Positions 620-31,936 of a DNA stretch of 64,000 nucleotides are shown in pieces. How positions within the stretch are numbered: position 1 is the stretch's first letter; every line of letters starts with the position of its first letter. The notes below the pieces were generated by a model, which was not told the origin of the DNA, searched no databases, and saw nothing but the letters and a program-made list of their open reading frames with translations. A program made the translations under genes and the position numbers. The stretch comes from Magallana gigas (Eukaryota): the NCBI RefSeq assembly GCF_963853765.1, contig NC_088858.1, positions 39,866,001 through 39,930,000 on the forward strand, given 5' to 3'.

Positions 620-3600
620 ATGTATGCAGTTGTGTTTTGTCTTGCATTTTTTGGACTAGTGCAGGGAATTCAACATAGAGATATTTTGGATCTTTACAAA
701 TATAGATACCATGGGAATGTAAGTGATTAATTTTTCGTCTTGTTCATTTTCAAAAATCATTCATCGTACGAATTCAAAATGATTCTGATGGGTGTATACC
801 AAACCGCCAGTTGCTGTGTTGACTCTGTCTAGGTTTTAAAAAAGATTCATAGTTGATTTCTAATCAATTTTATGTTTATCTTCAATTTTTGTCGTATCTA
901 TAGTTGCTATTTAAAATGATTTTTTTTTAAATCTAATATTTTGAATTTAGAAACGAAATGTTTCCAAAATTACAAAACAATATGAATAAACTTTATGGAT
1001 ATCAAAGTATTGAAAATATGTTTATACAGTAATATCCTATCAAAAAAAATATAATTGTTTTACACATTTTATCAATTGTTGATCGAAAAAATAATGATGC
1101 ATAAATGATAAAAATATATCTTGTATTATATACAAGTAGAATCCTATCGTATTGACTATGAAAAGAACAAAACCTACATTTTAAGCAAATCAACAGCATT
1201 TTCAAGAATCTATAACAAAATTTATGATCTTTCAAACAAATTCATCAGTCGTCTCTGCAATATGAATATGCATAAATCAACACTACTATCAAAATCCAAA
1301 TTAACAACAAAAGTAGATCCAACATTATCAATGCAAAACACAACACAAACTTTACAATCATTTACATCAAACTTAAATACCAGGTGGCGTTATAAAATTA
1401 AATCTAAGCATTCGACTAACATTGGAAGACTCCAAACAAATCTGTCAAGCGAGTACTTCAGACGGAAGCCATTCGAGGCACATCAGAGGCATGTTCCTGT
1501 TTACACTTGGCGATAAATAGTGATCATGGCCAAGAATACATAAAAACATCATGCATGCATAGAACATTTAGGATAGACCAGTGATGAAGCTGTGTTTGAT
1601 TTATTAACTACAAAATTTAAGTCATTTTTAAAGAGAGGCAACTCTACTAGCCAACAGTCGAGGAAACTAAGAGCATTTTTGGGAGTCTTGGTTACAGACA
1701 ACCCCACCCCCTTTGGATATATCACGACAAATATTTTTAAAATATTTTATCCCCTCCTTCTTAACAGAATGAGGAGGATTTTTATTTTTTTTTGGGGGGG
1801 GGGGGTTGTAACGCTGTACACCCCCCTTTTGTTTTGTATTGATGTTTGTTTGTTTGTTAAAGGGGCATGGTCACGATTTTGGTCAAATTTTATTTTTCTG
1901 TTTTTATTATTTGCAATACTTTTTGAATGCATTTCTAATGATCAAATGAAATTTGGGTGCCAGTCGTTGAGTTTTAAGCAAGATACAGGGCTTACAATTC
2001 TTCGTCATGTAAACAAGGCTCATGCCCTGTTTTTGTTTACATAGGCTCAAAATCCAGTAAAAAATCTTTTTTAAGCTGGTTTGTGTATCTTATAAATAAA
2101 CAGTTCCTAACGATTATCACATTTATTTTAGGTCTAAAACTGGAATTTTCACTTCAACGTTCAAAATGTAAACAAACGCTTTGTTTACATAACGAAGGAT
2201 TGTAAGCTCTGTAACTCGCTTATAACTCATCAAATGACACTCAAATTTTGGTTGCCTATTAAAATGCCTTACTAAAGCATTGTAAACATTAAAATCGTAA
2301 AAAAAAATGTTGACCAAAATCGTGACCATGTCCCTTTAAGACTATTTAGCATATTTGTTTATTTTGTTGTTATTTGTTTAAGATACTTAACGTTATTAGC
2401 ATGTATATTAATATTGCAGATAATTACGTTTGTTTTATATTCAGAGCCATATATAATGGGGGTTTTTATGAATTGTGAATTAAAAATAGAATTGTTTTAG
2501 AAAAATATACGTATTTTAGTCCTTTCGGTTGTCCATAGGTACTGCAATAACTCGCATCGACTTTTTCCAAATATTTTAAAGATAACCTAGATTTTCATTT
2601 CTGTTTAGGGTATATTTTTTGAAGCTACGCACGGAGGAACGTGTAGCTACGACCCCCCGAGCATGCCCCCCGTGGCCCGGTACATAGACAGGACCATCGC
2701 CATCAACCCCCGCCAGTTCTACCGGGGATACGCGTGTGGTGTTTGCTTTAGGGTACGATTTTTAAGATAAAAAATACCATCTTTTTCATGTATTTGTTTT
2801 CAAAGAACATATGTACAGATATTTTCATAACAAAAGTAGATAGTATTCTTTTTTTATCAGTTCATTTGATATTATTTGCAAAATTTATGAAGTATCTTTA
2901 AAAAGAAATTTTCGAAATATGATGCCTAAACATAGGTTTGGGTCTATGTTTTATGAAGCAATCAAGTAATATATGTGGAAGCATGTTCTTAAGTTTAAAG
3001 CATCAGTTTTGTGATGAGACAAACATTTTTGACAGAAATTCTTTGTTCACTCGACGGTTTTGTAGATAGCAACGCAAGTAGTTTATTCAAGAACAGTGTA
3101 CGCTTATATTTCTTGTATAGAAGACACAGTGAAATGAACACTGTATGTATTATTTACAAAAGTGTGTTTTAAACACCTGTACTAAGTGATACGAATGGAT
3201 TAAATTTTATGAACTTTATAAACTGGTCATGGTTCACTCAATTTTTCTATATTATGCGATAAAGATTAATTTTAGGTAAACATAGCTGGCAAATCTAATG
3301 GTGGGGCTCAAGTCGATGAGACATTTACCGTATTTGTTAAAGACTACTGTCCAAATTGTATGCCAGGTAAGGTGGAGCCAAAATCAAGCATGAAACGAAT
3401 CCTTCTTTGCGCGAGTATGCATTACAATAAAATAAATATATAAATGTCTACATCTTAAAAGATTTTATAAAAATGTTAAAAAGTGCAACATTTCCAATAA
3501 TTAAATGTTACATCTGGTATTTGGTGTGAGGAAATATTGTTTTATAAATCAGTGAATTTGATTTATATGTATGAAAATATACATGTATGTATATTGCATA

Positions 3601-4323
3601 TTTTACCTTAAGGGATACCCCTTTTAACGGATGACGTTGATGGAAGAATGTGGATGGAAATGCAGGCAATACAGTGCCCAGTAGGAAATACAACACTGGA
3701 GTACAAATTTCAGGGCAGCGGTCCTTACTATATAAAGCTTCAAGTCAGAAATGCAAGGTAAATCTTTGGGATTTTTCGATATTGTACAACAGCTGAATAC
3801 AAAATTCCTTTGTAAATTTAATTAACACTGCACATATTTGTGAGGAGTAGTAATTGTTATATTAACTAAGTTAATCGTCTGAATATATATAGAATTCCTC
3901 CAACAAAAGTAGAAATATATCAACCGAAGTGGCGACAGTGGACACCCTTGGCTCACACCACTGATGGCTTTTGGACATTTGGTACAGAACCTGTTGAAAG
4001 ACCAGTAAAACCACCTTTCCGAATTCGTTTGACTGCAGCAAATGGAGAAAGAATAGTTGACAGTGTTCCCGATTTAGGTAAGCATACCATATTAATCAGC
4101 AAACATATGAACTAACTATTAATGTATCGGCCAATAAACTTAAAAATAGGTCCTAATCATGCATTGATATTTTTGCTATTTGTTTTAATTTTTTTAATGC
4201 ATCATTTATTTGTTTCTGGCAATTATTTATACTATTTAGTGTTTCATTTTTATTTCAGTCAACGGAGTTGTAATGCAAGGTGATGGAAAACAATTTAAAT
4301 TTGATCCAAACTTACCAAAATAG
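620..4323 (+). CDS. Secreted expansin-like protein (EXLX/YoaJ-type: DPBB domain + CBM63-like domain), 6 exons, 242 aa
   Basis: Exons 620-718, 2609-2752, 3276-3366, 3613-3757, 3893-4077, 4259-4323. All introns are GT-AG, phases match and the total is 729 nt. Signal peptide MYAVVFCLAFFGLVQG. Expansin motifs: GGTCSYD, AINPRQFYRGYACGVCFRV, VKDYCPNC, QAIQCPVG, FQGSGPYYIKLQVRN, PFRIRLTAANGE. Confidence 0.92.
1861..2335. mobile_element. Non-autonomous TIR element (Kolobok-like MITE) in expansin intron 1
   Basis: TIR AGGGGCATGGTCACGATTTTGGTCAA ... TTGACCAAAATCGTGACCATGTCCCT, flanked by TTAA at 1857-1860 and 2336-2339. Related copy at ~19335-19809 and an end fragment at ~46600-46638. Kolobok assignment is inferred from the TTAA TSD and RR..YY ends. 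Confidence 0.85.
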
Positions 4324-5159
4324 ATTACCAGAAAAAGAGATACAGCACCGAGTTTGGAAAGTGAAAATTGTCTACTTCTATGTTCATCAAATATCCATTG
4401 TTACTTTACATTAAATTTACTGAACTATTCATATATTAAAAATCTAAAAGGCATACATGTGTACGTCGTTTGACTATGCATAAGTTTAAAAATGGGCACT
4501 TGTAAGAAATATATGCATGGTTACTTTTATTTTTATTTAATGCTCGACAAATACTAATAATTGTGTTTGCAAGGACTAAAATGTTTCAGCATATATGTAC
4601 AAAGAACACATACGCTGCTTTGATATCGCACAACTTATAGCGTTTTAAATAACTCCTAACATACTAATGAAAATTCGAACTTGAAGTGCCATTTTGCGAA
4701 ATGGCGAAATATATCTATTTATTATATCAAAACTTGAAATATGAATAAAGTATGAGTCAGCTGACAAATTCTTTATCTTGATATTAAAAGATTATAAAAA
4801 AAGTATTTACCGTTAGCACCTGACAAGTTTGCAATAAGGAAGGATTTTAGGCTCGAGTATAGTTTCTTTTTATGTAGTTGATTTTAATGTAAAACAATTT
4901 TTGTAAAAAAAATTCAGCCAGCCTTTATATCTTTTTACTGATTTAGATTTCCATTTTTATTCAACATCTACATGTAGCTGAAGTAAACTATTTTGAATTC
5001 ACACACCTCTTTGTCTATAATTGTTGTTTAGTGCAATTTTGTCATTAGATGAGTTTTATAATATATTACAAAAACACTCTATATTTGACAACTGCTTTGG
5101 AATTTTATTCCTCTACTAGCCGATTAACGTCATCATATGATATATAAGTACGTAACATT

Positions 5160-6020
5160 TTATTTTCCAACCAAAGGGCACCAACAACAAGTCTTATCCT
5201 CCGTCATGTGACATGGCAGATGGCAATGTGTTTCGTCGTATCCAAAACAGGGGAACGCTCTCTTTCCTTGTAAATACAAAAATGATTATGTTTGTCGAAA
5301 AAAGTAACATGACAACTATCTGTACCGGTTGAAAAAGTATGTAAGCAAGTACATGTAAGTTATTGTTTAGCATTGTGCATATATGACATTCAGAATACAA
5401 GTGAATTGTCATGTTGTAAATTTTAGAATTTTCTGGATAGGTGTACATACAAAAATTTAAGACATGACAATTACTGTATGACAGAATACATTGAAAATAA
5501 ATTATTTGCACCCGGTCGATCAGACATATAAGTCATTTCATATAAATTGTAAATATCCGCGTGCATGCTTTCTAGTAAAGAACAATTATCTTCAATTCTG
5601 CATATTTTCCGGTATGATAATTTTCTGAAAAAATAAACGCAAAATTAATGGAAACATAGTACGAGTGGGATTTTACAAGTGTAACGGACAGACGCCTTAC
5701 CTGGAAATATACGCGGACAACAACACCTGCTGTCCTCTACCGAGAAGTGACAACGGTAGCCGAGGTACACCGACTTACAGGCCTCCTCCGACTCCGCATA
5801 GTGACAGTCCTCTCGTCTCCTGGGGACCAATAAATACTCCATTACAATTGGTCAAAAAAAACTCATTATCACATACAGTATACAATGTTTGCCTGATGAA
5901 ACGCCTTATTCAAAGATGTCATTCTAGTATATAGAGAATGTTGTACATGACTTACCATTTCGCTGCGTTCGCCCATGCAACAAAACTCAAGAAAATCAAG
6001 AAGTTAGCGACTAGTTTCAT
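5160..6020 (-). CDS. Small secreted two-peptide cysteine-rich precursor, paralogue B, 3 exons, 96 aa
   Basis: Exons 6020-5956, 5819-5701, 5266-5160 (GT-AG, intron phases 2 and 1, 291 nt). Product MKLVANFLIFLSFVAWANA-AKWRR-EDCHYAESEEACKSVYLGYRCHFSVEDSRCCCPRIFP-GKR-AFPCFGYDETHCHLPCHMTEDKTCCWCPLV-GK*. Confidence 0.9.
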
Positions 6021-6581
6021 GGTCTCGAGCAGTGTCTCGTGTAGAGATTACACACGACCCTTTTCTGTAACTTGGCCCATTTTCTTCACTTATACAAGAT
6101 AACTAGCTTTGGATACCAGGATTCACGTACATAGAGCACAATACCAAATTTAGTAGATGCCCTTGGTCTTGCATAAAATTCAATTATTAATGGTCAGGAT
6201 AATGCATCTTGGCGCATTAGCATTATTATAAGGCGCAATGTTATTAATTATATAAAAGGTACATGTAGCTTTCACATTGGAAAGCAACCTCCAAAGAACA
6301 GTAACATTTGGGGTTACATATTTTAACTTTGAACGTTTTCTAATGAAAGTCGATGAAATCTATTAAGTCGTCGTTAGATTTCACCTTTCTTGTTCTTCAA
6401 AACAAAACTAAAATTTGCATATTTTATTTTACCGTAATACATATAGTCTTAAAAAATCTTGGGATTCTTGACATACGCACATTTACATTTTCTGATGAAA
6501 AAAAAGAAACGCAACTCCTATTCAGGCAGTACAAGAACATGAGAACATATATCGGATTAACTCTCTTTTATTGGTCTAGTA

Positions 6582-7741
6582 TCACTTTTGAGCCCCGTGG
6601 GAGGTGCACCAGCAGCAGTACTGTCCAGGGGCGCCACACCTGTCCTGACAATCCGTCACCATGGTACAGCCCGGGGGACAGTTCCAGTCCCAAACCATGG
6701 CACAGTGACCCACTTCTCTCTTCCCTGAAAATCAAAATCAAATCATAGTTTCTGAATAGCTTACAGTCTCCCATCAATACCCAGTACGGAAAATATGATA
6801 CTTGACACAATTTGGTTTTTTTTAATCACTAGCAAGTAGCAACACCGTATCTACATGTACATTGCAGTTGAGCAGTTGTTCATCGAGCAAACCCTTGTTA
6901 TTATTTTCTCTAAAATATTTTTTGAAATAAATCTACCCTCGCTCCAGAAATGTGCTTTTGGAACTTACATACATGTATTTGTAATGGACATGTATTAACT
7001 CAGTGAATAACTTCATTGTAAGATACAAAAAGTACGTGTACCATTTTTGATGACGTCATACCTGGGAAGATAGGAGGACAGCAGCACATGCCGTCATGCA
7101 TGTGACAGGAACCACCGAGGATACCGGTGTGACACTCTGTCTCTGTGTCTACGGGGCGGCACCATTCTCTCTTCCTGATGAAAAATTGAAAAGGTGCGGT
7201 AAGCCAAGCAGCAAAACCATTTAAACATGAAAATTTTATAAGGTACGCTTACCAAATTACAATATCCAGACCTTAGTTTTTAATTCATTCGAATTCTAAA
7301 GGCGTGATTGTTTGTTTGTATATACATTAAGGACCCGATCGAAATGTTTAATAACGTTTTAGTATAATAGTAGAAGTTTTTTTGGTTGAAAATCTACACC
7401 TTTTGAATTTATTGATTGAGGTTTGTTCTTATCAGAAATGCCTTCGAATAAAAAAAAGATTCCTTAACAATTAGGAAATAAATATATATAAAGACCCATG
7501 CATTCAATGCATTGGAAACAATGACATAGCAAGTCTGTTCCAATGGTGCATTAAGTGTTCTTTAACTCTGATAAACAGGCAATATATGTATACAATAGAT
7601 ATACACTCAATGACATGTGGTCATTATTAAGAGGTGTTTCAAGTCTGCAACGTTACACTTAACGAACAAATACTACCTTCTTGCAGCTTGTGAAACGGCA
7701 ATACAGCAGAAAAACAATACAAAGGTTTGTAAATGTTTCAT
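6582..7741 (-). CDS. Small secreted two-peptide cysteine-rich precursor, paralogue A, 3 exons, 106 aa
   Basis: Exons 7741-7677, 7174-7062, 6724-6582 (GT-AG, intron phases 2 and 1, 321 nt). Product MKHLQTFVLFFCCIAVSQA-ARRKR-EWCRPVDTETECHTGILGGSCHMHDGMCCCPPIFP-GKR-EVGHCAMVWDWNCPPGCTMVTDCQDRCGAPGQYCCWCTSHGAQK*. Same 65-nt first exon length and intron phases as paralogue B. Confidence 0.9.
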
Positions 7742-10224
7742 GTTGCCCGATAACAAAAAAGAGTTGGACGCGGAGATCTACGAATGACTCGGTCCTTATC
7801 TAGGAGGTCGTCTGTGGTGTCTCTGTAGAAAAAGTACCATATCGACCTATAGAGCGCTAGTTAATGGACGTCATTGTACAAAATTGTCAATTTCTTTCAC
7901 GCGTATTTTAAAATAAAATCCCACAAAGGACTGGAATTCTAACCAGAAACTAGGAGTAAAATTAAAACCAAAAACACACACACACACACAGACTGCAGAT
8001 AATTAGAGCAACAGATGAAGAGACAAGATACAACGAAAGATAGAATGAAAAATTACTTTTCATATGAATCGATTTAAAATTGCATAAATATTGAATTTAT
8101 CTATAAATATATATCCTCAAACTGTTTCAAGTTTAATTTCCTAGTACTCAGCATTTTCTTGTAGACTATGATTAATAAACAAAATTGGAACTTAATTAAA
8201 TAAAGATTAAACCTAAAACATGCTAATATTGATTCTACAAAACGTGATTAATGGTCTTTCTTGCGATTTTGTAAAACCCGATACAATTTCGTGTCACTTC
8301 GGTATAAAGGAGCTCTATTTGCACAAATACAGTCATTCAAATATTTCTTTACTTGCATGTAGGTCTTCCTGTTTTCAATGAAATCAGAAATTGGACAAAC
8401 TGGTTATTGCCATTGTAAATCAATGACGTAGTTTTTCTTCGTTTCTCGGGATGAATACAGTCTGTCTTGTATTGGTTTTCGCATTATGTACATGTATACA
8501 CTAACATTATTGAAGCTAAATTTATAGAAGAAATATCTCGTCTTTATCGGTTTGCAATACATGTGATTATAAAACTCTTATCAATTATTTTTTAGATATT
8601 TGAGTCATGAATTAAAAGCACCTTTTTAGCTCTTTTAAAGTATCGTTTCACAACTAGATGACAATTTCTGCATTGTCGGTGCATTACTGGTTGTTTTAGA
8701 TCTGCATTGTGAATTTAAAAAAATACATTTAGACTATAAAAACAAGTTAATGGATCAATTTGTATTTAGAACGACAAAAAAATGGCACTACGTGGTGATC
8801 TATTTATAGAACGAAATTAGATTCTAAACAGTAGCAAACCTTTGATTTATTTCCCTTTAAACAAAAGTATTTTTGTGAAAATAAATATCGGAATATTCCT
8901 GCACATGTGATAAATATGTTTAAATGATATTAAAATAAACCCACAAACAATCGGGGAAGTGGAGTGTTCTTTCTATACATGTATATAATTTCATGTCGGA
9001 AAGAGTGATTGAAATCCTCAGAATTAGAGTGCATCAAAGATCTATTCTTTTAATTTAAACTCCTGTCAGTAAGGGTTGGGGTATTTAAAAGTAATAACAA
9101 ACTCCCAGTAAAACTAGTGATTAAAATACAACTCTTTGTGTTACACGTATTTTGATCCCATTTCTTGACAATTTCCAAGGTACAGTTTGTACCCGCCTGA
9201 AATGCGTTGAGAAGCAAGATTTGCTGATGAGCAATCCTACCTTTTTATCTTAAAGATCAAAAGTTTCTTTAATTTCATATATGAATTTTTTGTCTCTAAA
9301 ATAACCTTTATGTATCCATGACTAAAAACAACATAAAAAAAACACAAGCTTTTTTTTTTTTTTTTTTTTTTAAGTTTGAAATCATCGCATGAAAAATCTG
9401 TATTTTTTATAATTCGAAGAACTTTATCATTGAAGAAATTTTGTGTATTTGTGGAAAATGAAACTGCAGTTTAAAGAAGTAAAGTATTTGAAATATTTTC
9501 GAAGGTGTTATTCTTTCTTATTTAGACGCCACAAAATCCAAATCATTAGGTTTTGTTTGCCCTTCGATGTCCTTAAGCTCAAAAGTGAGAGACGTTTTCA
9601 ATTAACTTTTAATGCTTGTAGGTTAATTAAGGGGAAAAGCTTACGTTTGCATTTTGATGCTATTTGGGTTTTTTTTATATTACAGTTACTCATCTAAAAT
9701 AAAAAGCATTTGATTAGAAACAAAGTTCATGCAGCAAAGCAGAGTGAATAATAAATATTTAATCATACGATTTAATACTCTCTTGCTTTCACATAAAACA
9801 TCAAGGTTGGCCAAAAATCGAACCCAAGTCAGGACGGCATGAAAACAACATGGGAGATTGAACACCGACTTGATTAGTCTTTTTTTTCTCGGGAAGCGTG
9901 GGTCAATATTTTTATAAGTCTATACCTACGTATTAAATAGATCTATCTTTACATCTTTGTATACGCTCGAGCGAGGTCGATACCCCATACAAGATCGGAG
10001 CGCTGTGGTCTCCGCTCCTCCAATACAGAACGGATTTATAGGAGGTGGTAGGGACTGCTCTTTATCTCAGGGTATTTATCTGCCTCAAAGCTGTTGTGTA
10101 TACACTCGTCAGCTCTTTAAATGTATTTTAAAGACACAGTCTAGTGTCTTGACAATAAATAAATAGTATATAGGATAATTAAGAGTTTTGTATCGATGTT
10201 TCCCCAATATATTCAGAGGAATTT

Positions 10225-10291: not shown

Positions 10292-13000
10292 GTAAGTGAT
10301 TTTTCTCATTGTGTGTTCTAAATTTTAACGAAATGTTGAAAGGGTCATCAATGCAAAGATAAATTACTAGATGATACTAAAACATTAGATAAATAATCTG
10401 ACCTTAAAGAGCATTTTGCATCATAATTCCAAATAATGTTCAGAAAGTTAAGCTAACTCTTGTTCTGTACAAGTTTTTAGCGTTCATGTTAATGGGTCTT
10501 AATGTATTTACGAACTTAAAAGTCTGCTCCCTTCGTACACTTCGACGGTAGCTTGATTAAACATCTCATGTTTCTGAAATCTATAAAAAGACACCCGCGA
10601 CAAAAAACGGATTAAAACCAAGTATATGAATTTATTTTAATGATATGTAAATTATCCTCTGGTACAAATCCTGCATGAAGTGGGTAAGTATGTTTGCCTA
10701 TCATTTAGTGCTGGATTCTCCAAGTCTAAAAAGCCAAACTACACTTATACTGTAATACTTAGTGTTAGTCAACCTCGTGCTGTTTCTTTATTTAACGATC
10801 CCGCGTATTTGTACACAATTACTGACAAATTATTTACACCTGTGCTATTTGTATTCGACTTATTAAACACCGTAAGGCTTTATAGCATTCAGAATTGTTT
10901 TTATAACTCTTATTTGAATCTTCGGATTGTAAATATAACTTTACCCGACATATATCGAGTTTTATCAGCTTTTTATTGTGTATTGAAAATATAAAAAAAA
11001 TTAACGGAAGAGAGTACTGAATCTCAAGGTCTTTAGCTTATACTTGTGCATGACCCCCCCCCCCCCCCCCAATTTGTTTTTCTTAAAACAACGTCGCGGA
11101 TTATACAGTAGAAGCATTTTGGCCAAGTATGAATAAGTAAGGTTTATCATGTCCCATAGAGCTGTTTCTAGACAGTGTACATGTATTATAAATGCATGAT
11201 AGACAGGTGAGATTTTTAAATTCGATGAATTTCCAACGAGCACATTAATTATTGTGATTCCTTGGTAGGAGGCCCACGCATTTAATGAAGAAGAAAAATG
11301 AAAAGAAATTTATATGGTTTTTTATAGAGAATCAGTGCAAGATTTAAAGTGAAGAAATGATGATGAATTTGTTGTTCGTGCATACAAAATATGCGGTTCG
11401 GGTCCAACACCATAAACTGAGAATGAACTTCTTCAATTGAAATTAAAACTTTCAATAATTAGATGAAATTCCCGCTGTGCGATTTTAGGTCTTAATACTA
11501 ATGTCATTGTTCTAGTCAAAATACTAAAGAATGGGATTAGTCTTTTATTAAAATTATTTATCTATAGTAATTCAAAAAAATCCCAATCATATTTTGGTCT
11601 TTCATTTTAAGTATGATCTTAGTTTTTGACCTCAAAGCCAAATCCAAATAATTACATCATAAGTATGCAATTTCATGCAATGATTTGAGAATGCGCTGAT
11701 ATACCAGGTATTTTCGAAGCGGATTACAGTTTAATTTCTCCATTCATTTATCTAAGACATTTATTAAATAAAGTATGTTAAAGGTACTTTTATATTACTC
11801 ATATGCAAGAAAATAGGGGTAGAGAGCATATTTACCAAAACAATGGATATTTTGATAGTCATACATGATGTTAAGGACAGCAGACTTACTCCTGCATTTT
11901 AGAATAAGAAGACTGTTTTTATATGTTTTAACTTGTACTATTGTTTATTTTCTAAATTTCTCTGTATTTGGCTTTTCCCCGTACATTAGCTAGAGATTTA
12001 CATTCTAAGTTATAGTTGAATTTGTCGGCTAGTTCACCAGTATTAAATACAGTGTATTACATAGTGTGTTACATCAATCAGTTGAATCTACCTGTTAAGA
12101 GGGTTCGATAGACGTGGCCATTTTTAGACCGTGTTATTCTCCTTTAAGAGAAGAGCTCTACATAAAAATACAGGAAAATACCCAAATTTAACAATTAAAA
12201 TTTACGGAAGTTTTCATTGGTTAATAATAGTTTATAGGTAAACAAACCATGAAATCCTAAAATTTTAGATAGCCCTGACGGTTACTTTGTTGACCACTGA
12301 GAGCCTCTTTAATATGGTCAAATGTTGTTTAATATTCTAAATTTAACAAGGGGTTACCGATGCCGCTTGCTTATTCCATATTCTTTCCTAAACACAGGTG
12401 TACAGAGATAATCTTTCCTATAAATTCCACCGGCGAACACCCGTTGTCCCTTCAATCAAGTGAGACTTTTGTATGGAATCGAAGAGTATATCTTTCAATA
12501 CTCGAAATCAATCTCCGGCTTGTCTGAGGAATCTTTTCAGTTTAAACACAAGGCAAGTCGAGGGTCCTCTTAACGCGTTGACAGCTTTCTGTAAGATTGT
12601 GTTTTTATGTTCGAACACATTTGATGCTTTTAGTGAACTTAACCATCTCACTCACTCACGTCAAAGTAGGCCTGAAAGGCCGACTCCATTGATTCGGATT
12701 CGTCTGTGCTTTCGATAGACAAAAATCCCACCTTCTCATTCAAGTTTTATACCTAGTACTTTATCCCTGTTTCTTCTTAAAGTCACTTTGATCCTATATA
12801 ATGCAAAAATTTGGTTTTATCTCGTATACAAAATCGCCTACATTGTATACTGACAACGATTAAGATATAATTGTATTCATAAGTCGCGTAATTTCAAAGA
12901 ATGAAATGAAGTAGATATTTAACAATTAGAAAATATATCAGTATTTGAAGAGTATTGAATCAATAAAATTAATTAAGAATATTCTATCTTATATTGTGTA

Positions 13001-13005
<5 letters not shown>

Positions 13006-13076
<71 letters not shown>
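13006..13076. repeat. (CT)n microsatellite
   Basis: Uninterrupted CT run of about 70 bp. Confidence 0.98.
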
Positions 13077-13079
<3 letters not shown>

Positions 13080-13682
13080 GGCATCAATAATTCAGTGTTA
13101 CTACAAAGGTAATTTCGTTTATTTTAATCTCGAATCTCCAAAATAAAAGAAGATTCTTAATTAAAAGACGACGAAAAAATAAATTAACCGAAGAGATTTG
13201 CGCTAATTACCCCACTTAATCATTTCTACCAAAAAAAATTAATTACGTAAGAGGGAACCGTGTTCTTTAACCCGAAAGGGGGCTTATTCTTCAGAAGTAC
13301 ACTGTACAAAGAAATAAGACCCCCAGTCAAGTATTATATTAAACATGCAAAGACATTTCCTTCATCACTCTGACATGCATCCAATGGAAGGCTGGATACG
13401 ACCTTGTAAGATATAAATGAACATTTAAAATTCAGGAAATAGAATACCAAGTTTTGTCAGATCTGAATGGAGCCATTTCGTGATCTTTATTTATCTTAGA
13501 TAATCAAACCTGCCTATTGTTATCATTAAGCTTAAACAGAAATATACATTATTTCATTTCAGATTAGTTTGTCGCAGTGTTGTTACAGAAGTTAGAAGAG
13601 CGTTCCATTAATCAAAACATGGCCCTGGGAACACAGGGGAGATGTCATATACAGGACTTGGGCACGACTTGAGTTGTTGACC

Positions 13683-14915
13683 ATGTCTTCTTCGTCCAGT
13701 TCAAGTAGCTCTGGAATTTTTCAAACGGAAAACCGTGCCACAACTCAGATTTCACGTTTAAAACAAGAGTACGATCGACGACTTCTGCATTACGAAAAAG
13801 AATTCGATGTGTCTCTTTCTAGGATGGTGAATCGCGAACGAGGACTGAAGGAGTCCATGTTGGCCTACACAGAACGTATGCGCAAGATTACGAACACCAA
13901 ACATAGTATGGATGGAATGTTGGCTCAGGAGTCATCGCCATTATACGTCAGAGCCAAACACATTCCAAAGTTCCCTGTCACAAAAAATAAGACAAGAAGA
14001 CCGGCATCTTTTGACGAACTCATTGGGAAAAATGCAAATTCAAACTCAAATAAACCGAGGAGAGAAAAACCGAAGTCGGCTTCGAGACTTTCGCTTCCGT
14101 TGCTACCGGACCGCTACAAAAAGAATTCCCATAACGTGAAAATAAGTTTCGTCAGTGCTTCTGATTTGTACGATATAGTGGATTTCAGTATACGAAATAA
14201 AGGAAACAAAGAGGAAACTCTAAGATATTTGGGTATGGAAAGTTCAAACAGTCAGTCTTCGCCATCGCCTACCGACCGCCCCGCGGCAGGCGGGGGAAAC
14301 CGGAAGACGTCAAGGAACGGAAGTAAACTTGCCAGTTTATCCCCGACACCCCAAAACAACAAAGGATTCAGTGCTCTGCCGACTCTACCGCCGATTGAAA
14401 GCGCTGAGAAAGACAGTAACGATGAAGCTGACAATTCGGACACTGATAGTGACAGTCTAGACTTGAATAAAGCAAGTGTGGAAGCTTTCAAAAGGAGACC
14501 GAACCGTGCTAAACGAATGCAGATCAATAAACCGGGTCTTGATGACATCCCAGAAAATGACGTCACTTCTCAAAAGAGATCAGCAAAAAGTGAAAGAACG
14601 TTGCCATCTCCACCCCCGAAGCATTCCCCGAGAAATGTGATCAATATGCAATCTCATCTTATGTCCATTCCGGAACACGATGCGTCGGGCGATGAACTAA
14701 TGGCCCCCGACAGGAAGAGAATGGGTAGACTTAGCCGCCGTGAGATTGGAGGACAGAATTCGATTCGGCTTGAACCTTTCTCTGTGTCTGAAAGGAGCAC
14801 GGTCAAAGAACAGGAAGAAACAGACCAGCATTTAAAAATGAAATTGAAAGCGCAGAAACGTTTTAAAAAGTTGATCTTTCTTCGGGATGTTCCGGAGAGG
14901 CATCATCGATTTTGA
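13683..14915 (+). CDS. Uncharacterised 410-aa protein: N-terminal predicted coiled coil, long Ser/Pro/Lys-rich disordered region, basic C-terminal helix
   Basis: Long open frame with GC well above the flanks. First in-frame ATG at 13683 (accATGT), downstream of a splice acceptor at ~13562. No recognisable domain. Confidence 0.85.
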   Translation: MSSSSSSSSSGIFQTENRATTQISRLKQEYDRRLLHYEKEFDVSLSRMVNRERGLKESMLAYTERMRKITNTKHSMDGMLAQESSPLYVRAKHIPKFPVTKNKTRRPASFDELIGKNANSNSNKPRREKPKSASRLSLPLLPDRYKKNSHNVKISFVSASDLYDIVDFSIRNKGNKEETLRYLGMESSNSQSSPSPTDRPAAGGGNRKTSRNGSKLASLSPTPQNNKGFSALPTLPPIESAEKDSNDEADNSDTDSDSLDLNKASVEAFKRRPNRAKRMQINKPGLDDIPENDVTSQKRSAKSERTLPSPPPKHSPRNVINMQSHLMSIPEHDASGDELMAPDRKRMGRLSRREIGGQNSIRLEPFSVSERSTVKEQEETDQHLKMKLKAQKRFKKLIFLRDVPERHHRF

Positions 14916-17900
14916 CACCTTTTATGATCTTTAATATACCGTTATTTAATTTTGTTAAATCATTAAAAATCGTTATATATTGTCCGTTAGAGATTGTTAT
15001 CTTTGCACGGGTTTTCTTGTAAATATTTGTTTGACTACACCAGCTCCGCCAACCAAACCAAACACCCTGTGAGATCGACGTTTGGAGATATGCACTAAAG
15101 TGCACTCTACGATGTCCCGCCATAGCTCTGCGGGCAGTTTCAACTTTTGATAACATCGCACAATTAGGGGGTCATAGTCGTAGTAACGAGATTATATGCA
15201 TTATTTGACAAAAAGTAGCGTCGATTTATCTTGACGAGTCTGCATGTTTAGCAGCGTAGCGTGCAGAAATGTTCACCCGATGTATTGGGGTGCGCTACTC
15301 GGGTGTTATCTCGACAATTAACCGGCTGATGAATTTCCTCGTTCGTCTAACCAAATCAATTTTAATTTCACTTTTATTACGCAGAAGTCGGGTACTATTC
15401 TTCTCATTTAGGCTGTTTTGCACGGTGCTAAATGAAATTCCAATTTCCAATTACCTTTTCAGATATCGCAAAGAATTCAATACAGTGGCGAACTTTCTCA
15501 GATCATTCCGATATTTAAAACTTACCTTGCTCTATACATTAAAAAGAGGTTTTTTTTCTTGAGCAAGTTCAGAGAGTAGCTCGTTATCTTTAAAAATGCA
15601 CGAAAATTTATGTTTGTATATAGTTTGAAGCCTTTATTGAATAAAGTGTTAATATACATGTATATATCCCCAAATATTTCAGCAGTAGGGACATCTGGTA
15701 TCAAACGGGTTTATATTTACGACCTTTAGTATAGATGATATATTTGATTGTTCTTAGTAAAAAAGCACTTTCGAACAAATAATGATAAACCCTACAATTG
15801 CTGAAAAGAAGGGATTAAGACTTATAAAGGGCGGGTCTAAAAAGATCTTGTCTGAAATCTTAAAGATTAGAAATGAAAGAGTTTCTATATACAAATTGAA
15901 ATCTAATTCGATCAGATTTCGACTGTTATCCTGCATTGGTCCACTTTATTTTCTAATCATTTTATTGTCATCGCATTATTTCCTCATATCAGTCCCAAGT
16001 TTGTAGGGATTTCTTGAAGAAAACTATCAATCACTACACGTATCTCCATCTTTTATTGTGATGTCAACAACTCTCAAGATTACGTAATCCCTGCCACAAA
16101 ACTCTTCTATCGAGTTATTATTTCCTTTTTTCATTGATGTCTAATCTAACTGACATTCGAATCGACAAAAACGTTTCTTAATTCCTTGCAAATGAGCCCC
16201 GAAAGTAAACTGGCATTTCCGTTGGAGTTCTGTAAATACGTTTTATTGGACGTTTTCAATGCAACAATTTAATGTAATGCATTAGTTATTCTCCTGCATT
16301 ATATCTGTAAACATTCGTGCAAGCCTTTGATATCAGCGGGATATCAGCCAGATAAGACTCCTTAGATTACTCATATCCGACATTATGCCTCTATTTTTAA
16401 AGGGTTAGATCACTGTCAAATTATATAATAATAAGTCGGAAAGGTAGAATCTATCGAAACCAAGTGCAATCGAAATGTACTGTTCTACATCAAGTATTTG
16501 GCATAAATTTTAAAATATTTTCGATTATAACATTTGGTATTTGAAAAACATTGCTTTATATATTCCTTGTTCACAGACAATCAGTATACATGTTCTGCTT
16601 CCAAACGATAAATATTGAAGTTGGCTTCTGGTACTTACTTCCTGTGACGTCTTGTTGAATTGATAGCTACCTTTCTTTTGTTTATCTTTTCCGCAATGTT
16701 TCATCATCTCAGAAGCATAAAATACATAAGTGACTTAAAGTAAATATTTCTTTTGATATAAAAAAAAAATCAATCAATTGAACCTTATCACCTACTGTAA
16801 AGTTTATACACCAGTGCTTTTAGAATATTGGAGGATTTTGGTCAATGTCAGAACTGTTCAACCTTTCTAAAACGCACTGTGAATCAGTACTGGAGTATAT
16901 CGTTTTAATTTTAGCGTGACCTTGAAAATCAAACAGAGTGATATACGTTGGGTACGCCTCATTCATGTAATATTCATTGCAATTTGTATTCTGGTCGCTG
17001 TGTCTAATGATCTACAAACTAATTGCAGCAATTACTAACACTCATTATTTTTTCCTAAAAGTAAAGAATCTTTGTTGTTGATGGCTTATCATTTAAATTT
17101 TTTTAACGAACAGAACCTTTTAAAAATTGGAAATCTCATTACCTGGTAGTTAAAAAATATCCATTTTGTAAAACCAGGTCAATATATTTTAGCAGTGGCA
17201 ATCTTCGTTTAAAACTTGTTTAAATCCAAAATCAAAAAACTAAATAACAAATTCAAAATACACACACCAATAGATTTATTGCTTCACGGCTGTTTATTTA
17301 AAGGTAACAGGTTGATACTATAGAGCGTGTGTTTCAGTAGACCCGTTACTTCTTAGAATCAGCATAGGAATCCATAGTAAAGCAAATCAAGGAATGAGCC
17401 AACTGAAAGGAAATGTAAATGCAAAATTTGTCAGATTTAAAGATGTTGGCAGAGGAAGGCTCGTGTGATGCGTAACAAACTTAGGCTAAAAAGATTTTAT
17501 TTAAAGGTTTCTGGACACGATTTTTAAATGAAAATTTTATTTTTGATTTTTATGTATAAAATGCTTTACTTGTGTACAAATGCATTTTGGATGATACACC
17601 AAAATCTGAATGTTAAAAATCAAGTTACAAGCGAGATACAGAGGAAAAGTCGTTGTAATGCAAACAACGCTCGAGTCTTATATTTGTTTACAAATAGTGT
17701 AAAGTAAAAAAAAAATACCATTTTTGACAAAATAACTCTTGGCAAACACGACAAATGAATTAAATGTGTTCATAAGTAATCAACTGTTACAACAAAAAGC
17801 AACATTATATTGAAACTTCTACCAATACAACACGTACATGTACATTGTATGTTAACAATAACAGGACTCGATCTTTGTTTACCAAAAAAAAAAGAATTCT

Positions 17901-23534: not shown

Positions 23535-26500
23535 ATGAAAGTCTACGCAGCCTTATTAATTGTAGGTGTTTTTGGATTATTTATTTACTAGACTAAGTGC
23601 TTATTCATTTTATTTTAACGTTGGTCTTTATCGTTTATTTTTTTAACCTTGACAATCTTTAATTTTTTTAGAAATGTAATCTAACGTAATTTCATAGGTA
23701 ACCAACTTCAGGTTAAACTTATTTTTTGCTGGCAGGGTAGTTAAAAGTTAAAATATAAAATTAATACAAAATAATAAATCCACAGAAAAAAATTTACATT
23801 GATTGTTCTTTGAATTTCAGATAGCCTTTGGATCGGCCTTGACAACGTCTAGTCCCCTAAAAGGTAAGACCTGTCAGATTTATCGCTATTTGTCTAAAGG
23901 TATTAGCTTTCTAGATAACGATAATCCAAAATCATTACAAGATTGTGCTATCAGTTCAATATCCTTAAAAATCAATCGAAACAAATCGAAATAAGCCTGA
24001 CATTTTTGACTCGGAAATATTTTCATAACACCGAGATATAATACAGATTTCGTTATTCTCGATTGAAAAGAAACGCCACTGTTTCCAGTTATATCCGAGA
24101 GATTCATTAGGAAAAATATATCAAAAGAGACTAACATCAAAATGCAAGGACGAATTCATAATTAAACAAAAGCCAAAGAAAAATCCATATAAGCATGTAT
24201 TTTCGAACTGGTCATTTTGAAATCGTAGTATGGGTTAAAACGTAATTTTAAAAAAGAGAAAGAACGAAATAAGAATTCAAGTAAGCAAGCAACTTAGCGC
24301 AATTGTTCTTAAGACTTAAACTTTGATATATTATTCTATGTTATTCTAGATTTCGGTATAACAGAATGTCAAGACAGCATGGCAGATGTTGTCTTTGTCC
24401 TGGATTCCTCCGCTAGTATTTGGGAGCCTGATTTTAACAGACAGGTGGATTTTGTTAAGAACATCGTCAAGCAGTTCAAAATTGGACCAAACAACACGCA
24501 AGTAGGAATCGTAACATTTGGCCAATACAACACGCTTCGGTTTCATCTTAAGAAATACCATGACAGCGAAGAGCTACAGAGAGCTATTGGTTGGATCCGC
24601 TTCAAACCTGGTAGAACAACCAATACCGGAGGTGCTATCAAATATATGTCCAATGAAATGTTCTCAGAGAAAAATGGCGCCAGAGAAAATTTCCCTAAAG
24701 TAGCCGTTGTCATTACGGATGGAAAATCTACCGAGACGAAAAAAACCATCGAGGCCGCACGAGTTGCGCGTGAAATGGGGATTCATTTGTTTGCCATAGG
24801 TGTGGGAAAGAAATATGACAGAAATGAATTAGAAAAAATTGCCAACAAACCATCTGATGAATATGTTTTCACGGTTGACAACTACAGTGCTTTGAAAAAC
24901 ATCCTGAACGTATTTGCAGTCAAAACTTGCCAAGGTATGCTATAACCTACAGACTGTCTCCTATTTAGTCATTCTACATTAAATTTTGTGATTAATCAAT
25001 TATGTGGTTGTGAGTTTGTTCTGTAAGAATTGTTTCTTTTTCTTTCAGTGACAACAACACCGAAACCGACAACCACAACGACAATAGCCACAACAACCAC
25101 CACAGTACCTACCACTACCACCACAGAACCTACCACTACCACCACAGATCCTACCACTACCACCACAGAGCCTACAACTACCACTTTTTCTTACAGAATT
25201 GGGGAGCAGAGTGATCATCCCTTCGTTAAAGGTATGCTTCCTTAAATAGAATAGAATACTTTGCAAATGGTTTAAAGCATTTTCTCACGCTGTAAATAAT
25301 TCATATTTCTTCCTAATATTTACGTATGTGCTTTTGTTTATTTTCCAATAAAATCCTTTATTTTAGCATGCAATGGAAAACCAGCGGATGTGTACTTCGT
25401 AATGGACTCCTCAAGGAGCATCGGGTCCAGCAACTACCAGAAACAGAAGATGTTTGTCAGCAAACTCCTGAGTGCCTTTGACATTTCAAACTCCAACACT
25501 AGAATCGGGGTTGTGACGTACAGCAATGACGTCAAGGTTGACATTCCTCTTGGTTCTATCTCAACACTCCCGGAACTTCAGAAAGCTGTTAACAATCTCC
25601 CGTACCATGCAAGAGGTACCAACACGGGAGATGCCATACATTTCGTAAGAAAAGTCGGATTCGTCAAAGGCGTTGCTAGACCGGAAGTAGCCCATATAAT
25701 GATCGTTCTTACTGATGGCCTCTCGATGGATTCCGAGAAAACACGCAGAGAGTCTTCTCTGGCTCACGATGCTGGAATCTATGTGTTTGCCATTGGAATT
25801 GGCAAAGGGGTCGACACAGTAGAACTCGGTGCCATTGCCAGCAACCCGGACAAAAATTTCCTTTTCCATGTCGAGAATTTTGATGCCCTAAGTTCCATCA
25901 GAACACTGCTCGCCACAAGAACTTGTGAAGTGTTGCCAAAAGACGAAGCAGTTTCAACCAGTGGTAAGAATCTAAAAGCAAATTATATCGATGCATTTCA
26001 CTTGATAAGAATGTCCAATCCTCGTAATAGTTATTAAATCATATCAGTAGTAACTAATGATTTCTTTCTTCATTTCAGTTGTACCACTACCGAAATATGG
26101 ACTAATGGACATCGTTTTTGTTTACGATGTATTCGGAATTGGAGCCCAGAAGACTCTTATCATCAACAAATTCATCTCGTCCATCGTAAGAAGGATAACT
26201 ATTGGAATGGGAGACATCTGGGTTGGTCGTCTGATTGCGGATTGTCCGGATATGACGCAAAATGGTCTGGTTCCGGTAACATCCTGGAATGATAACTCCA
26301 AGATTACGTTCCCGGGACTAGGAAGCCTCATTGAGAAACTGGATGTCTTCTTTGACAGTAATGGCGGCCGATACAACGCGCGGCGTACAGTGGTTGTGTT
26401 TGTGGATGAGCAGGAACAGAACGTAATGGACGTGGTCTCCAAGCTCCACTCTCTCCAAAACATGAACGTCATCACCATCATCCTGGGGGAGGAGGAGAAA

Positions 26501-26614
26501 TACATCCTGGAGGAGACCAGCACCAGGAAGTATTTCTATGTTCCCAGTTACAACGAACTTCTCCAGTTCACGTTTCCGTGTTTGAAACAGCTTTGTTTCT
26601 GTGATTCCGTGTAA
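23535..26614 (+). CDS. Secreted triple von Willebrand A domain protein with Thr-rich linker (matrilin/collagen-VI-like matrix protein), 6 exons, 656 aa
   Basis: Exons 23535-23561, 23821-23863, 24350-24934, 25049-25231, 25367-25963, 26079-26614 (GT-AG, 1971 nt, in frame). Signal MKVYAALLIIAFGSA. vWA1 DVVFVLDSSAS, vWA2 DVYFVMDSSRS, vWA3 DIVFVYDVFG (degenerate). PTTTTTE repeats in exon 4. Confidence 0.93.
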
Positions 26615-30558: not shown

Positions 30559-31936
30559 ATGGAATCAAAAGTTCAGCAACGTTCAAAGGAATGGTTTCAA
30601 ATTCGTAAATCTGTGTTCCTAACATCATCAAAGTTTGGAGATGCTCTTGGTGTTGGGATGGGAAAGCCGTATGATTTCTTTCTCTCTCTAATTTCTGAAG
30701 ATACTGACGAAGAGGAGGAGGAAGAGGAAGAAGTAGAGTCCTCCAATACAAAGCATGGACTTACTATGGAGGAGATCATCCTGGAATGCTATCAATTGCT
30801 GACAGGACACAAAACCCGCGATTCTGGGTTTTGGATGTCTAAAGACAGGATTCTTCAAGATTTGATTGGAACTTCTCCCGATGCCGTTGTTGTTGATGAC
30901 GAAAATAAAGACATTGGACTTTGTGAATTCAAGGCGCCCATTTTTAGAATGTACAAGAAAGAAAATTCAGTACATGGTAATATTTTAAATGTATTAGTGA
31001 AATCTTCTTGTTATAGTGTAGTATTACTTGAGATTCATTTTGCATTATTTTATTTATAAAGGTATTCCAAGACACTACATGGCCCAAATTCAAGGACAGC
31101 TTGCCATAACTGGATTACCGTGGTGCAATTTTTTAGCTGTGTGTAAAAATACTAAAGAAATAATGCTTAAGAAAGTGTATTTTCATTCAGAGTACTGGGA
31201 CAATGTAGTGAAAATTCTCAAGCAGTTTTGTTATGCTCTTCAGGTAAGTAGCCGGATTCCCTGGCACCAGCATTCTTCAGGTCAATATTCAGTCTCAAGT
31301 CTGCGATTAGCACATGTATTTCTATTTCGGTTTTGAGTTGAGATGAACTGAGGGATTTGAATGTGTTGGTGACAGTGGAACCTGTCATGATATTGTAAAT
31401 TCAAAAACATAGATCCAATTCCTCATCACAATGCAACACAAAGAGAGAAATAATATGTAAACTTGGTAATTTGAATCTAGGTATCACTATAGTATTAGCT
31501 CAGCAACATAACGTGAACCTTTGTTTTACTGCAGTGTTTTACTGTTAATAATTACAAATGTACATATACTGGGAGTAATCCTTTTTTGTAGGATGCAAAA
31601 TTAAGAAAAGAATTGGGATATGACCCGTTGGATTTTGAAGGAGCAAGAAAACTACAAACTTGGCCGGTACAGATTGATTACCTGCCAGGCGAGCTGTCAA
31701 TTCAAGTTGAAGATATTCTCCAAATAGATAAACGTGGCCGATTTAGTGGACCATCCAGAGTTTGGTTGTCGTTTGACTTCCTTGTTGGACAGTCATATTC
31801 TTTACCCCAAAGGTTAAAAGGATATGCAGACAAGATGATTCTGGATGTGGATGAACAAATTAGTTGTAAAAAAAGGAAGACTGAAGAAGGAGAAGGAAAC
31901 AGTCAAAAGACATTTACATCCAATGGACATTCATGA
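30559..31936 (+). CDS. YqaJ-like viral recombinase / lambda-exonuclease family (PD-(D/E)xK) protein, 3 exons, 314 aa
   Basis: Exons 30559-30976, 31062-31243, 31592-31936 (GT-AG, 945 nt). Motifs QRSKEWFQIR..LTSSKFG, HG..mE, GTSPDAVV, LCEFKAP, HYMAQIQGQLAITG..WCNF. AATAAA at ~32083. Confidence 0.92.

Follow-up and report, generated by a model that had tools for sequence, protein, structure and literature searches.

Two adjacent genes of the oyster Magallana gigas encode an undescribed, oyster-restricted family of prohormone-like precursors

Two intact three-exon genes, here called A and B, were found side by side on the minus strand of a stretch of DNA from the oyster Magallana (Crassostrea) gigas, and together they form an oyster-restricted, undescribed family of prohormone-like precursors. 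The window analyzed is the whole stretch of 64,000 nucleotides (nt) (contig NC_088858.1, positions 39,866,001 to 39,930,000), which is 100% identical over 17.7 kb to C. gigas chromosome OY970750.1; gene and feature coordinates are given as window positions. Joining of the predicted exons places both genes within positions 5160 to 7741, and tblastn with both proteins showed these to be the only copies of A and B in the window. All four introns are of the GT-AG type, with intron 1 in phase 2 and intron 2 in phase 1 in both genes; the phase of intron 1 follows from the shared exon 1 length of 65 nt, and the phase-1 intron 2 splits the Gly codon of a G-K-R motif. An initial annotation of this DNA had proposed a pair of complete three-exon genes with a common 65-nt first exon and common intron phases, and every detail of it that could be checked, including the positions, was right. 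The locus was compared with its counterparts in other oysters, giving seven loci from six species: C. gigas, C. angulata, C. virginica, Ostrea edulis, Saccostrea echinata, and S. cucullata, the last represented by two contigs.

Gene A comprises 321 nt after splicing and encodes 106 amino acids (aa). Its first exon (65 nt, 7677 to 7741, minus strand, as are all coordinates of A and B) carries the start codon, the signal peptide, the first spacer residues, and the phase-2 donor; the N terminus is the same as that of the RefSeq protein, and the length of the exon is 2 modulo 3 at all seven loci. Exon 2 (113 nt, 7062 to 7174) contains the remainder of an RRKR site, the coding sequence of peptide A1 (7063 to 7167; 35 aa with six Cys and the C terminus CCC-P-P-I-F-P), and the first base of the Gly codon. 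It has 73 to 81% identity in other genera, with which it also aligns as DNA. Exon 3 (143 nt including the stop codon, 6582 to 6724), which rests on the joined model and the cross-genus alignment, continues with the remainder of the Gly codon, K-R (6717 to 6722), peptide A2 (6585 to 6716; 44 aa with eight Cys, including a CCWC motif), and the stop codon. An AATAAA polyadenylation signal can be read 10 nt past the stop (6567 to 6572).

Gene B comprises 291 nt after splicing and encodes 96 aa. Exon 1 (65 nt, 5956 to 6020) carries the start codon, the signal peptide up to A-N-A, the beginning of the spacer, and the phase-2 donor, and orthologous exons of 62 nt and of the same phase are found in C. 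virginica, O. edulis, and Saccostrea. Exon 2 (119 nt, 5701 to 5819) holds the remainder of a K-W-R-R site, peptide B1 (5702 to 5812; 37 aa with six Cys and the C terminus CCC-P-R-I-F-P), and the first base of the Gly codon, and has 89 to 92% amino acid identity across genera. Exon 3 (107 nt including the stop codon, 5160 to 5266) consists of the remainder of the Gly codon, K-R (5259 to 5264), peptide B2 (5169 to 5258; 30 aa with six Cys, including a CCWC motif), a terminal G-K (5163 to 5168), of which the Gly is kept in O. edulis and Saccostrea, and the stop codon. An AATAAA polyadenylation signal follows 51 nt past the stop (5104 to 5109). Scans for Rfam families and for bacterial-type promoters and terminators returned results that were empty or irrelevant for the locus.

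Both precursors have the same order of elements, namely, a signal peptide, a five-residue spacer, a six-Cys peptide, G-K-R, and a second Cys-rich peptide. The predicted signal peptides of A and B have a basic residue at position 2, a hydrophobic core with a mean Kyte-Doolittle value of about 2, and small residues at −3 and −1 (S-Q-A in A and A-N-A in B), and the spacer ends in a furin-type site, R-R-K-R in A and K-W-R-R in B. Peptide 1 of both genes ends in CCC-P-x-I-F-P, and peptide 2 of both contains C-C-W-C; the framework of A2 is C-x7-C-x3-C-x5-C-x3-C-x6-CC-W-C, and that of B2, with six Cys, is C-C-C-CC-C. The signal, the basic sites RRKR and KWRR, the G-KR site, the end of B in GK before the stop, and the peptide lengths of 35, 44, 37, and 30 aa for A1, A2, B1, and B2 had all been listed in the initial annotation, and all of them were found. 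Because the number of Cys in each predicted peptide is even (6 or 8), each could fold alone. A His beside a Cys (the C-H motifs) is conserved in all modules, and an N-terminal Glu, which could cyclize to pyroGlu, is kept on three of the four peptides. All four predicted mature peptides are acidic, with isoelectric points (pI) of 4.8 to 5.8 and D+E exceeding K+R in every one. The tails of A2 vary across orthologues and carry no Gly signal; B2 would end in a Val- or Leu-amide across loci.

The model of gene A is residue for residue the same as the C. gigas protein XP_011442045.1, named "tyrosine-protein kinase receptor Tie-1," and as UniProt entry A0A8W8HUN7, with the same exons, and K1Q485 is an older model of the gene that differs in its first exon. 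The same 106-aa protein is recorded for C. angulata as XP_052701449.1, "Tie-1-like," while the orthologues of C. virginica, O. edulis, S. echinata, and S. cucullata (two contigs) are labeled "uncharacterized." These orthologues were first reached through a 104-aa S. cucullata protein that matched an exon 2 profile. The six A proteins compared do not differ in R-R-K-R, in G-K-R, or in any of the 14 Cys. Identity with Tie-1 was considered and rejected, as the product has only 106 aa, contains no kinase, Ig, EGF, or FN3 Pfam domain, and gives no PDB match to Tie at an E value of ≤10; the sole likeness of gene A to the Tie-1 receptor tyrosine kinase is that both are Cys rich. The name "Tie-1" is an annotation artifact. 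The description of the two genes as hidden therefore applies to B, which is annotated at none of the seven loci, but not to A, which was already in RefSeq and UniProt with the same splice model.

No gene is called at the position of B at any of the seven loci, and tblastn places B downstream of A at every one. At six of them (C. gigas, C. angulata, O. edulis, S. echinata, and both S. cucullata contigs) B is intact, with a product of 93 to 96 aa, and it retains exon 1 (62 or 65 nt, hydrophobic, and of phase 2), the acceptors, the donors, and the stop. [KR]-W-x-R and G-K-R occur in all seven B loci, the latter being invariant in all 14 copies of the two genes. The Gly preceding the basic residues is likewise kept for A1 and B1 throughout (seven of seven loci), and B2 retains its terminal Gly or Gly-Lys wherever it is intact, at six loci. 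The B gene of C. virginica has intact exons 1 and 2, and its B1 shares 92% identity with that of C. gigas; exon 3 (positions 13365 to 13440 of locus L003, from one assembly) is not collinear with that of other oysters. Read through the shared acceptor, C. virginica B would consist of the signal, B1, G-K-R, eight residues, and a stop, and a Cys-rich remnant of B2 lies in another frame. That C. virginica B retains B1 and G-K-R but not B2 fits products that fold independently, with B1 as the essential one; the retention of B1 with its amidation signal suggests separate actions of the peptides, of which B1 would be the most important. A tblastn match of B exon 3 in the downstream neighbor of the C. 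virginica locus (E value, 1.7e-4) was discarded, its in-frame reading not being a Cys-rich module.

Two rearrangements were observed next to the genes. The C. angulata locus has a 4.4-kb insertion between A and B (L001, positions 11266 to 15645) that is absent from C. gigas at window position ~6480. Its ORFs encode a zinc knuckle, a reverse transcriptase with RNase H, and a tyrosine recombinase of the Phage_integrase family, which identifies it as a DIRS-like retroelement, and neither gene is touched. In O. edulis, an exact 24-nt repeat of the end of A exon 3, covering the C-C-W-C part, lies just past the stop of A (L004, positions 13893 to 13916) and looks like a small tandem duplication.

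Comparison of the DNA across genera confined conservation to the predicted exons. When positions 4800 to 8200 were aligned by blastn with the five loci other than those of C. gigas and C. angulata, two species too similar for a meaningful contrast between exons and introns, the alignments in the Ostrea and Saccostrea loci coincided with the six predicted exons only, and in C. virginica five of the six exons aligned, B exon 3 being missing. The introns of B cannot be aligned across genera, whereas its exons can. That joined gene A equals a database protein residue for residue and that the alignments are restricted to the predicted exons indicates that the gene models are not products of chance. 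Nei-Gojobori counts of C. gigas against other genera gave proportions of nonsynonymous differences (pN) of 0.05 for B exon 2, 0.07 to 0.13 for B exon 3, and 0.10 to 0.19 for the exons of A, with proportions of synonymous differences (pS) of 0.5 to 1.0, at or near saturation. The ratio of nonsynonymous to synonymous rates (dN/dS), where dS could be estimated, was 0.04 to 0.22. No segment of the locus is under stronger constraint than B exon 2, and B1 is the most constrained and probably the key product of gene B.

A and B are single copy at each locus and stand in conserved synteny in the six species. Selection on both has been old, strong, and purifying and is not an ongoing diversification. 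The initial annotation had noted heavy divergence of the residues between the cysteines, which holds for A compared with B (46% and 38% identity in the peptide alignments) but not for orthologues, and had seen in it a system diversifying on fixed Cys scaffolds, a view contradicted by the pN of 0.05 to 0.19 against the pS of 0.5 to 1.0 and by the single-copy, conserved synteny. Judged from the sequence comparisons, the duplication that gave rise to A and B is older than the separation of Crassostrea, Ostrea, and Saccostrea. The heavy divergence of A from B is accordingly old as well, because the split predates the three genera and each gene has since remained nearly unchanged.

Searches for relatives beyond the oysters returned only the family itself. 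The four exon peptides and six full-length A orthologues matched nothing in Pfam above chance, the two matches at an E value of ≤10 (AKAP28 and a zf-like model) being at chance level and below cutoffs. Sequence searches of PDB with single exon peptides and with three profiles likewise gave chance matches only; those to a mannose-6-phosphate receptor fragment, a spike protein, and WD-40 repeats were rejected, the E value of the last being a sum of repeats of about 3 bits each with no Cys aligned. A profile of exon 2 from A and B, run against 1.84 billion cluster representatives, found one real match (S. cucullata) and two repetitive artifacts, and no B-type protein was present among these representatives even though the profile included B exon 2. 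A full-length A profile built from six orthologues, run against 5.8 billion proteins at an E value of ≤10 with candidates of 57 to 185 aa, recovered only its own family, within the sensitivity allowed by a word prefilter. A protein search with the exon 3 alignment gave no candidate of 25 to 80 aa, which is uninformative on longer relatives; only the search with the full-length A profile covered the peptide 2 module without a tight length limit, and gene B was searched exon by exon. In the literature searched, neither the motifs of A and B nor the accession of A was found. The statement of the initial annotation that no named bivalve family matches is thus borne out by Pfam, PDB, and the profile searches of 1.84 and 5.8 billion proteins.

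The AlphaFold2 model of the gene A protein, computed with six orthologues, is of low confidence, with a predicted local distance difference test score (pLDDT) of 58.8 and a predicted template modeling score (pTM) of 0.39, and carries no claim about the fold. It shows residues 3 to 19 as a helix and comprises two small beta/alpha modules and, at residues 57 to 66, a linker with a pLDDT of <50. Foldseek of this low-confidence model against PDB gave no match below an E value of 3.7.

Some likeness was also seen between the two halves of the precursors. MAFFT aligns B2 on the columns of peptide 1, and composition-preserving shuffles of B2 (5163 to 5264) against A1 (7063 to 7173) or B1 (5702 to 5818), all on the minus strand, gave z scores of 3.2 to 3.7. 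Shuffles of B2 against A2 gave z scores of 1.9 to 4.7, so that the likeness of B2 to peptide 1 is comparable, and those of A2 against A1 or B1 gave no signal. The hhalign comparison of peptide 1 with peptide 2 was weak, at a probability of 6% over 11 columns around C-H-M-x-D-x-x-C-C. These comparisons are suggestive only; the halves of the precursor may be of common origin, in which case A2 would have gained a pair of Cys.

The steps by which the precursors would be processed draw on established enzymology of the secretory pathway. Signal peptidase would cleave after S-Q-A in A or A-N-A in B, and furin or a prohormone convertase would remove the five-residue spacer at R-R-K-R in A and [KR]-W-x-R in B. 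A convertase would then cleave after G-K-R at the exon 2/3 junction, carboxypeptidase E or D would trim the basic residues, and peptidylglycine alpha-amidating monooxygenase would convert the exposed Gly to a C-terminal amide. The predicted products are Pro-amidated six-Cys A1 and B1, a free-tailed eight-Cys A2, and an amidated six-Cys B2. Every readable orthologue has kept the basic and G-K-R sites, and the precursors therefore look as expected of a substrate of convertase, carboxypeptidase, and amidating enzyme. With a signal peptide, conserved basic sites flanking each peptide, and Gly before the basic residues, A and B have the features of convertase-processed, amidated peptide prohormones, which are a functional class and not a homology family.

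We consider it somewhat probable, from the sequences and their conservation, that A and B are adjacent, anciently duplicated, oyster-restricted prepropeptides whose products serve the animal itself as regulatory peptides of a hormone-, neuropeptide-, or paracrine-like kind and act on receptors. A regulatory role is ranked first on three grounds, namely, the acidity of the products, the occurrence of the genes as single copies in fixed synteny, and the strength of purifying selection. More tentatively, and as a possibility that we would not yet put forward as the probable case, the two genes may constitute an undescribed signaling system confined to true oysters, with two prohormones duplicated before the oyster genera split, two disulfide-rich peptides in each, a possibly duplicated module of the form C...C-H...C-H...CC[C/WC]-P, a B1 that is almost invariant yet unannotated, and receptors on which the peptides would act.

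Several points weigh against the regulatory role. The role is deduced solely from evolutionary mode and chemistry, and the structure model of A is too low in confidence to give a fold or a disulfide pairing. Basic pairs in folded proteins can stay uncut. That B is uncalled in all seven assemblies and has no B-type cluster representative may point to very low or restricted expression. In addition, the motifs of A and B were not found in the main text of two oyster neuropeptide surveys (PMC8398477 and PMC4200219), in the accessible part of the supplements of the former, or in the accessible part of a mollusc-wide survey (PMC6425005), nor was the family found among the CCWamide and agatoxin entries of a spiralian survey; neuronal expression finds no support.

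Other readings of the same features were weighed against the regulatory one. The strongest of them, though still unlikely, is that A and B encode an uncleaved, two-domain secreted protein, either an acidic matrix or shell protein or a metal-binding protein using Cys and His, in which the basic sites are unused. The products are indeed acidic and Cys rich with a conserved His beside Cys in all modules, and dibasic sites are not always cut. The G-K-R, however, lies in the segment modeled as disordered (residues 57 to 66) and is invariant in every copy of both genes, the furin-type site always ends the spacer behind the signal, the terminal Gly or Gly-Lys of B2 is present at every intact locus, and C. 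virginica B retains B1 and G-K-R without B2, which would hardly be expected of a gene whose functional unit was the two-domain protein. A role as host defense effectors, as in the bivalve defensin, big-defensin, mytilin, myticin, and CRP-I families, is rather unlikely as well, and slightly more so. Small, secreted, disulfide-rich products of a lineage-restricted tandem pair would suit it, as would amidation, which is common in antimicrobial peptides. Yet all four predicted peptides are acidic, which also makes the defense or toxin-like role raised in the initial annotation less likely, and no Pfam match to defensin, macin, or myticin models was obtained. Each locus in the six species has a single A and a single B in conserved synteny, and the dN/dS of about 0.04 to 0.22 is unlike the diversifying selection or presence/absence variation described for mussel CRP-I (PMC10138031).

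The remaining readings are improbable. In a two-chain, disulfide-linked heterodimer following the logic of insulin and relaxin, the chains would pair before excision of G-K-R, which would fit two Cys-rich segments joined by a short excisable linker and the adjacent Cys in both (CCC and CC-W-C). The even Cys count per segment (6+8 in A and 6+6 in B), the lack of an insulin match in Pfam, a linker of only G-K-R in place of a C-peptide, the absence of confident interdomain packing in the model (pTM, 0.39), and the loss of chain 2 in C. virginica B while chain 1 stays at 92% identity all speak against it. It is a little less probable still that gene B is a nonexpressed relic and that A alone is functional. 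B is uncalled in seven of seven assemblies, was not found in protein collections, and has a disrupted exon 3 in C. virginica, but its ORF, start, four splice sites, and polyadenylation signal are intact at six of the seven loci, and its exon 2 is the most constrained of the locus (pN, 0.05, with saturated pS), with exons that align across genera and introns that do not. Because a relic would not hold such a pattern across genera near synonymous saturation, B is not taken to be one. Least probable, and largely refuted, is the reading of A and B as divergent paralogues of the CCWamide/agatoxin-like peptides. That family resembles A and B in its short three-exon secreted precursor with the signal in exon 1, a Cys-rich C-C-W peptide in the last exon (of eight Cys in the case of A2), a basic cleavage site at the last exon junction, and no known receptor (PMC8557429). 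As described there, its members have a C-C-CC-C-C-C-C framework with an aromatic residue between Cys 6 and 7, are basic, end in an amidated aromatic residue, and have intron phases 1 then 2, with the last intron splitting the basic site and the middle exon forming a nonconserved spacer. In contrast, A2 and B2 differ in framework (B2 having six Cys), the peptides are acidic and lack an amidated aromatic C terminus, the introns are in phase 2 followed by phase 1, exon 3 contains the whole of K-R, and exon 2 encodes a conserved, Cys-rich, predicted amidated peptide. No CCWamide precursor was recovered at an E value of ≤10 with the A profile, within the sensitivity left by the prefilter, and the genuine Cragi-CCWamide is a gene separate from A and B.

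As candidate regulatory precursors, A and B can also be set beside other known peptide systems. The Cragi-EH precursor, which is eclosion hormone-like, contains two different six-Cys peptides with a dibasic site between them (PMC8398477) and is thus like A and B in carrying two disulfide-rich ligands per chain. EH is bilaterian-wide and has a Pfam model, however, whereas A and B are lineage restricted, have no Pfam match, and differ in Cys spacing and in their G-K-R amidation signals. Cragi-CCCGS and Cragi-GSWN are described in the same text as orphan secreted Cys-rich peptides, some predicted to be amidated, that are poorly annotated or unannotated and restricted to molluscs or oysters (PMC8398477). 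They share with A and B the small size, secretion, richness in Cys, predicted amidation, poor annotation, and restricted distribution, but their names, loci (LOC and scaffold identifiers), and motifs, as given there, differ. Like the precursors of mussel MgCRP-I and of conotoxins, A and B are prepropeptides from small multiexon genes with a basic site before a disulfide-rich mature peptide; unlike those, in which the mature peptide is hypervariable, they have conserved mature peptides, a pro-region of five residues, and two genes only. Membership in the defensin, big defensin, macin, mytilin, or myticin families is not indicated, with no match to their domain models and peptides that are not cationic (pI 4.8 to 5.8).

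Oysters count among the major animals of aquaculture and act as ecosystem engineers, and the catalogue of their peptide hormones is still growing. The two-gene family described here is listed in none of the surveys searched, with A filed under a wrong database name and B missing from seven of seven assemblies, although B1 is about 90% identical across oyster genera despite saturated synonymous sites. Provided that the peptides are produced, they make good candidates for a regulatory signal specific to this lineage, and they would offer a new disulfide scaffold in which three adjacent Cys are followed by a Pro-amide. The locus also illustrates how annotation systematically overlooks short multiexon peptide genes, which can be recovered from exon footprints across genera.

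The neighborhood of the pair is likewise shared among oysters. The upstream syntenic neighbor is a 413-aa single-exon ORF (13674 to 14915, plus strand) without a Pfam match, which corresponds to a gene of 406 to 410 aa called at all seven loci. The downstream neighbor of B (about 620 to 4323, plus strand) is, by position, a called 242-aa gene, of which the ORFs at 1121 to 1516 and 1592 to 2044 are probably exons; this gene is one of a tandem pair (241 to 245 aa, no Pfam match) that flanks the locus in most of the loci. Farther along the window, three von Willebrand factor type A exons lie at 24379 to 26614 (plus strand), with a 21-nt coding repeat at 25096 to 25184. They are followed by a 166-aa ORF (30559 to 31059, plus strand) with a YqaJ-like recombinase/exonuclease domain of a kind often found on mobile elements, and by a satellite-like tandem array (39033 to 40501) with a 166-nt unit, also scored at 329 and 495 nt, that is present in 3.0 to 4.7 copies depending on the period with 81 to 90% matches. 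An uninterrupted ORF of 1,166 aa with many C2H2 zinc fingers occupies 47086 to 50586 on the minus strand, and a 180-aa ORF at 62018 to 62560 (plus strand) gives a partial match to the FAD-dependent oxidoreductase (DAO) family and is probably an exon of a larger gene.

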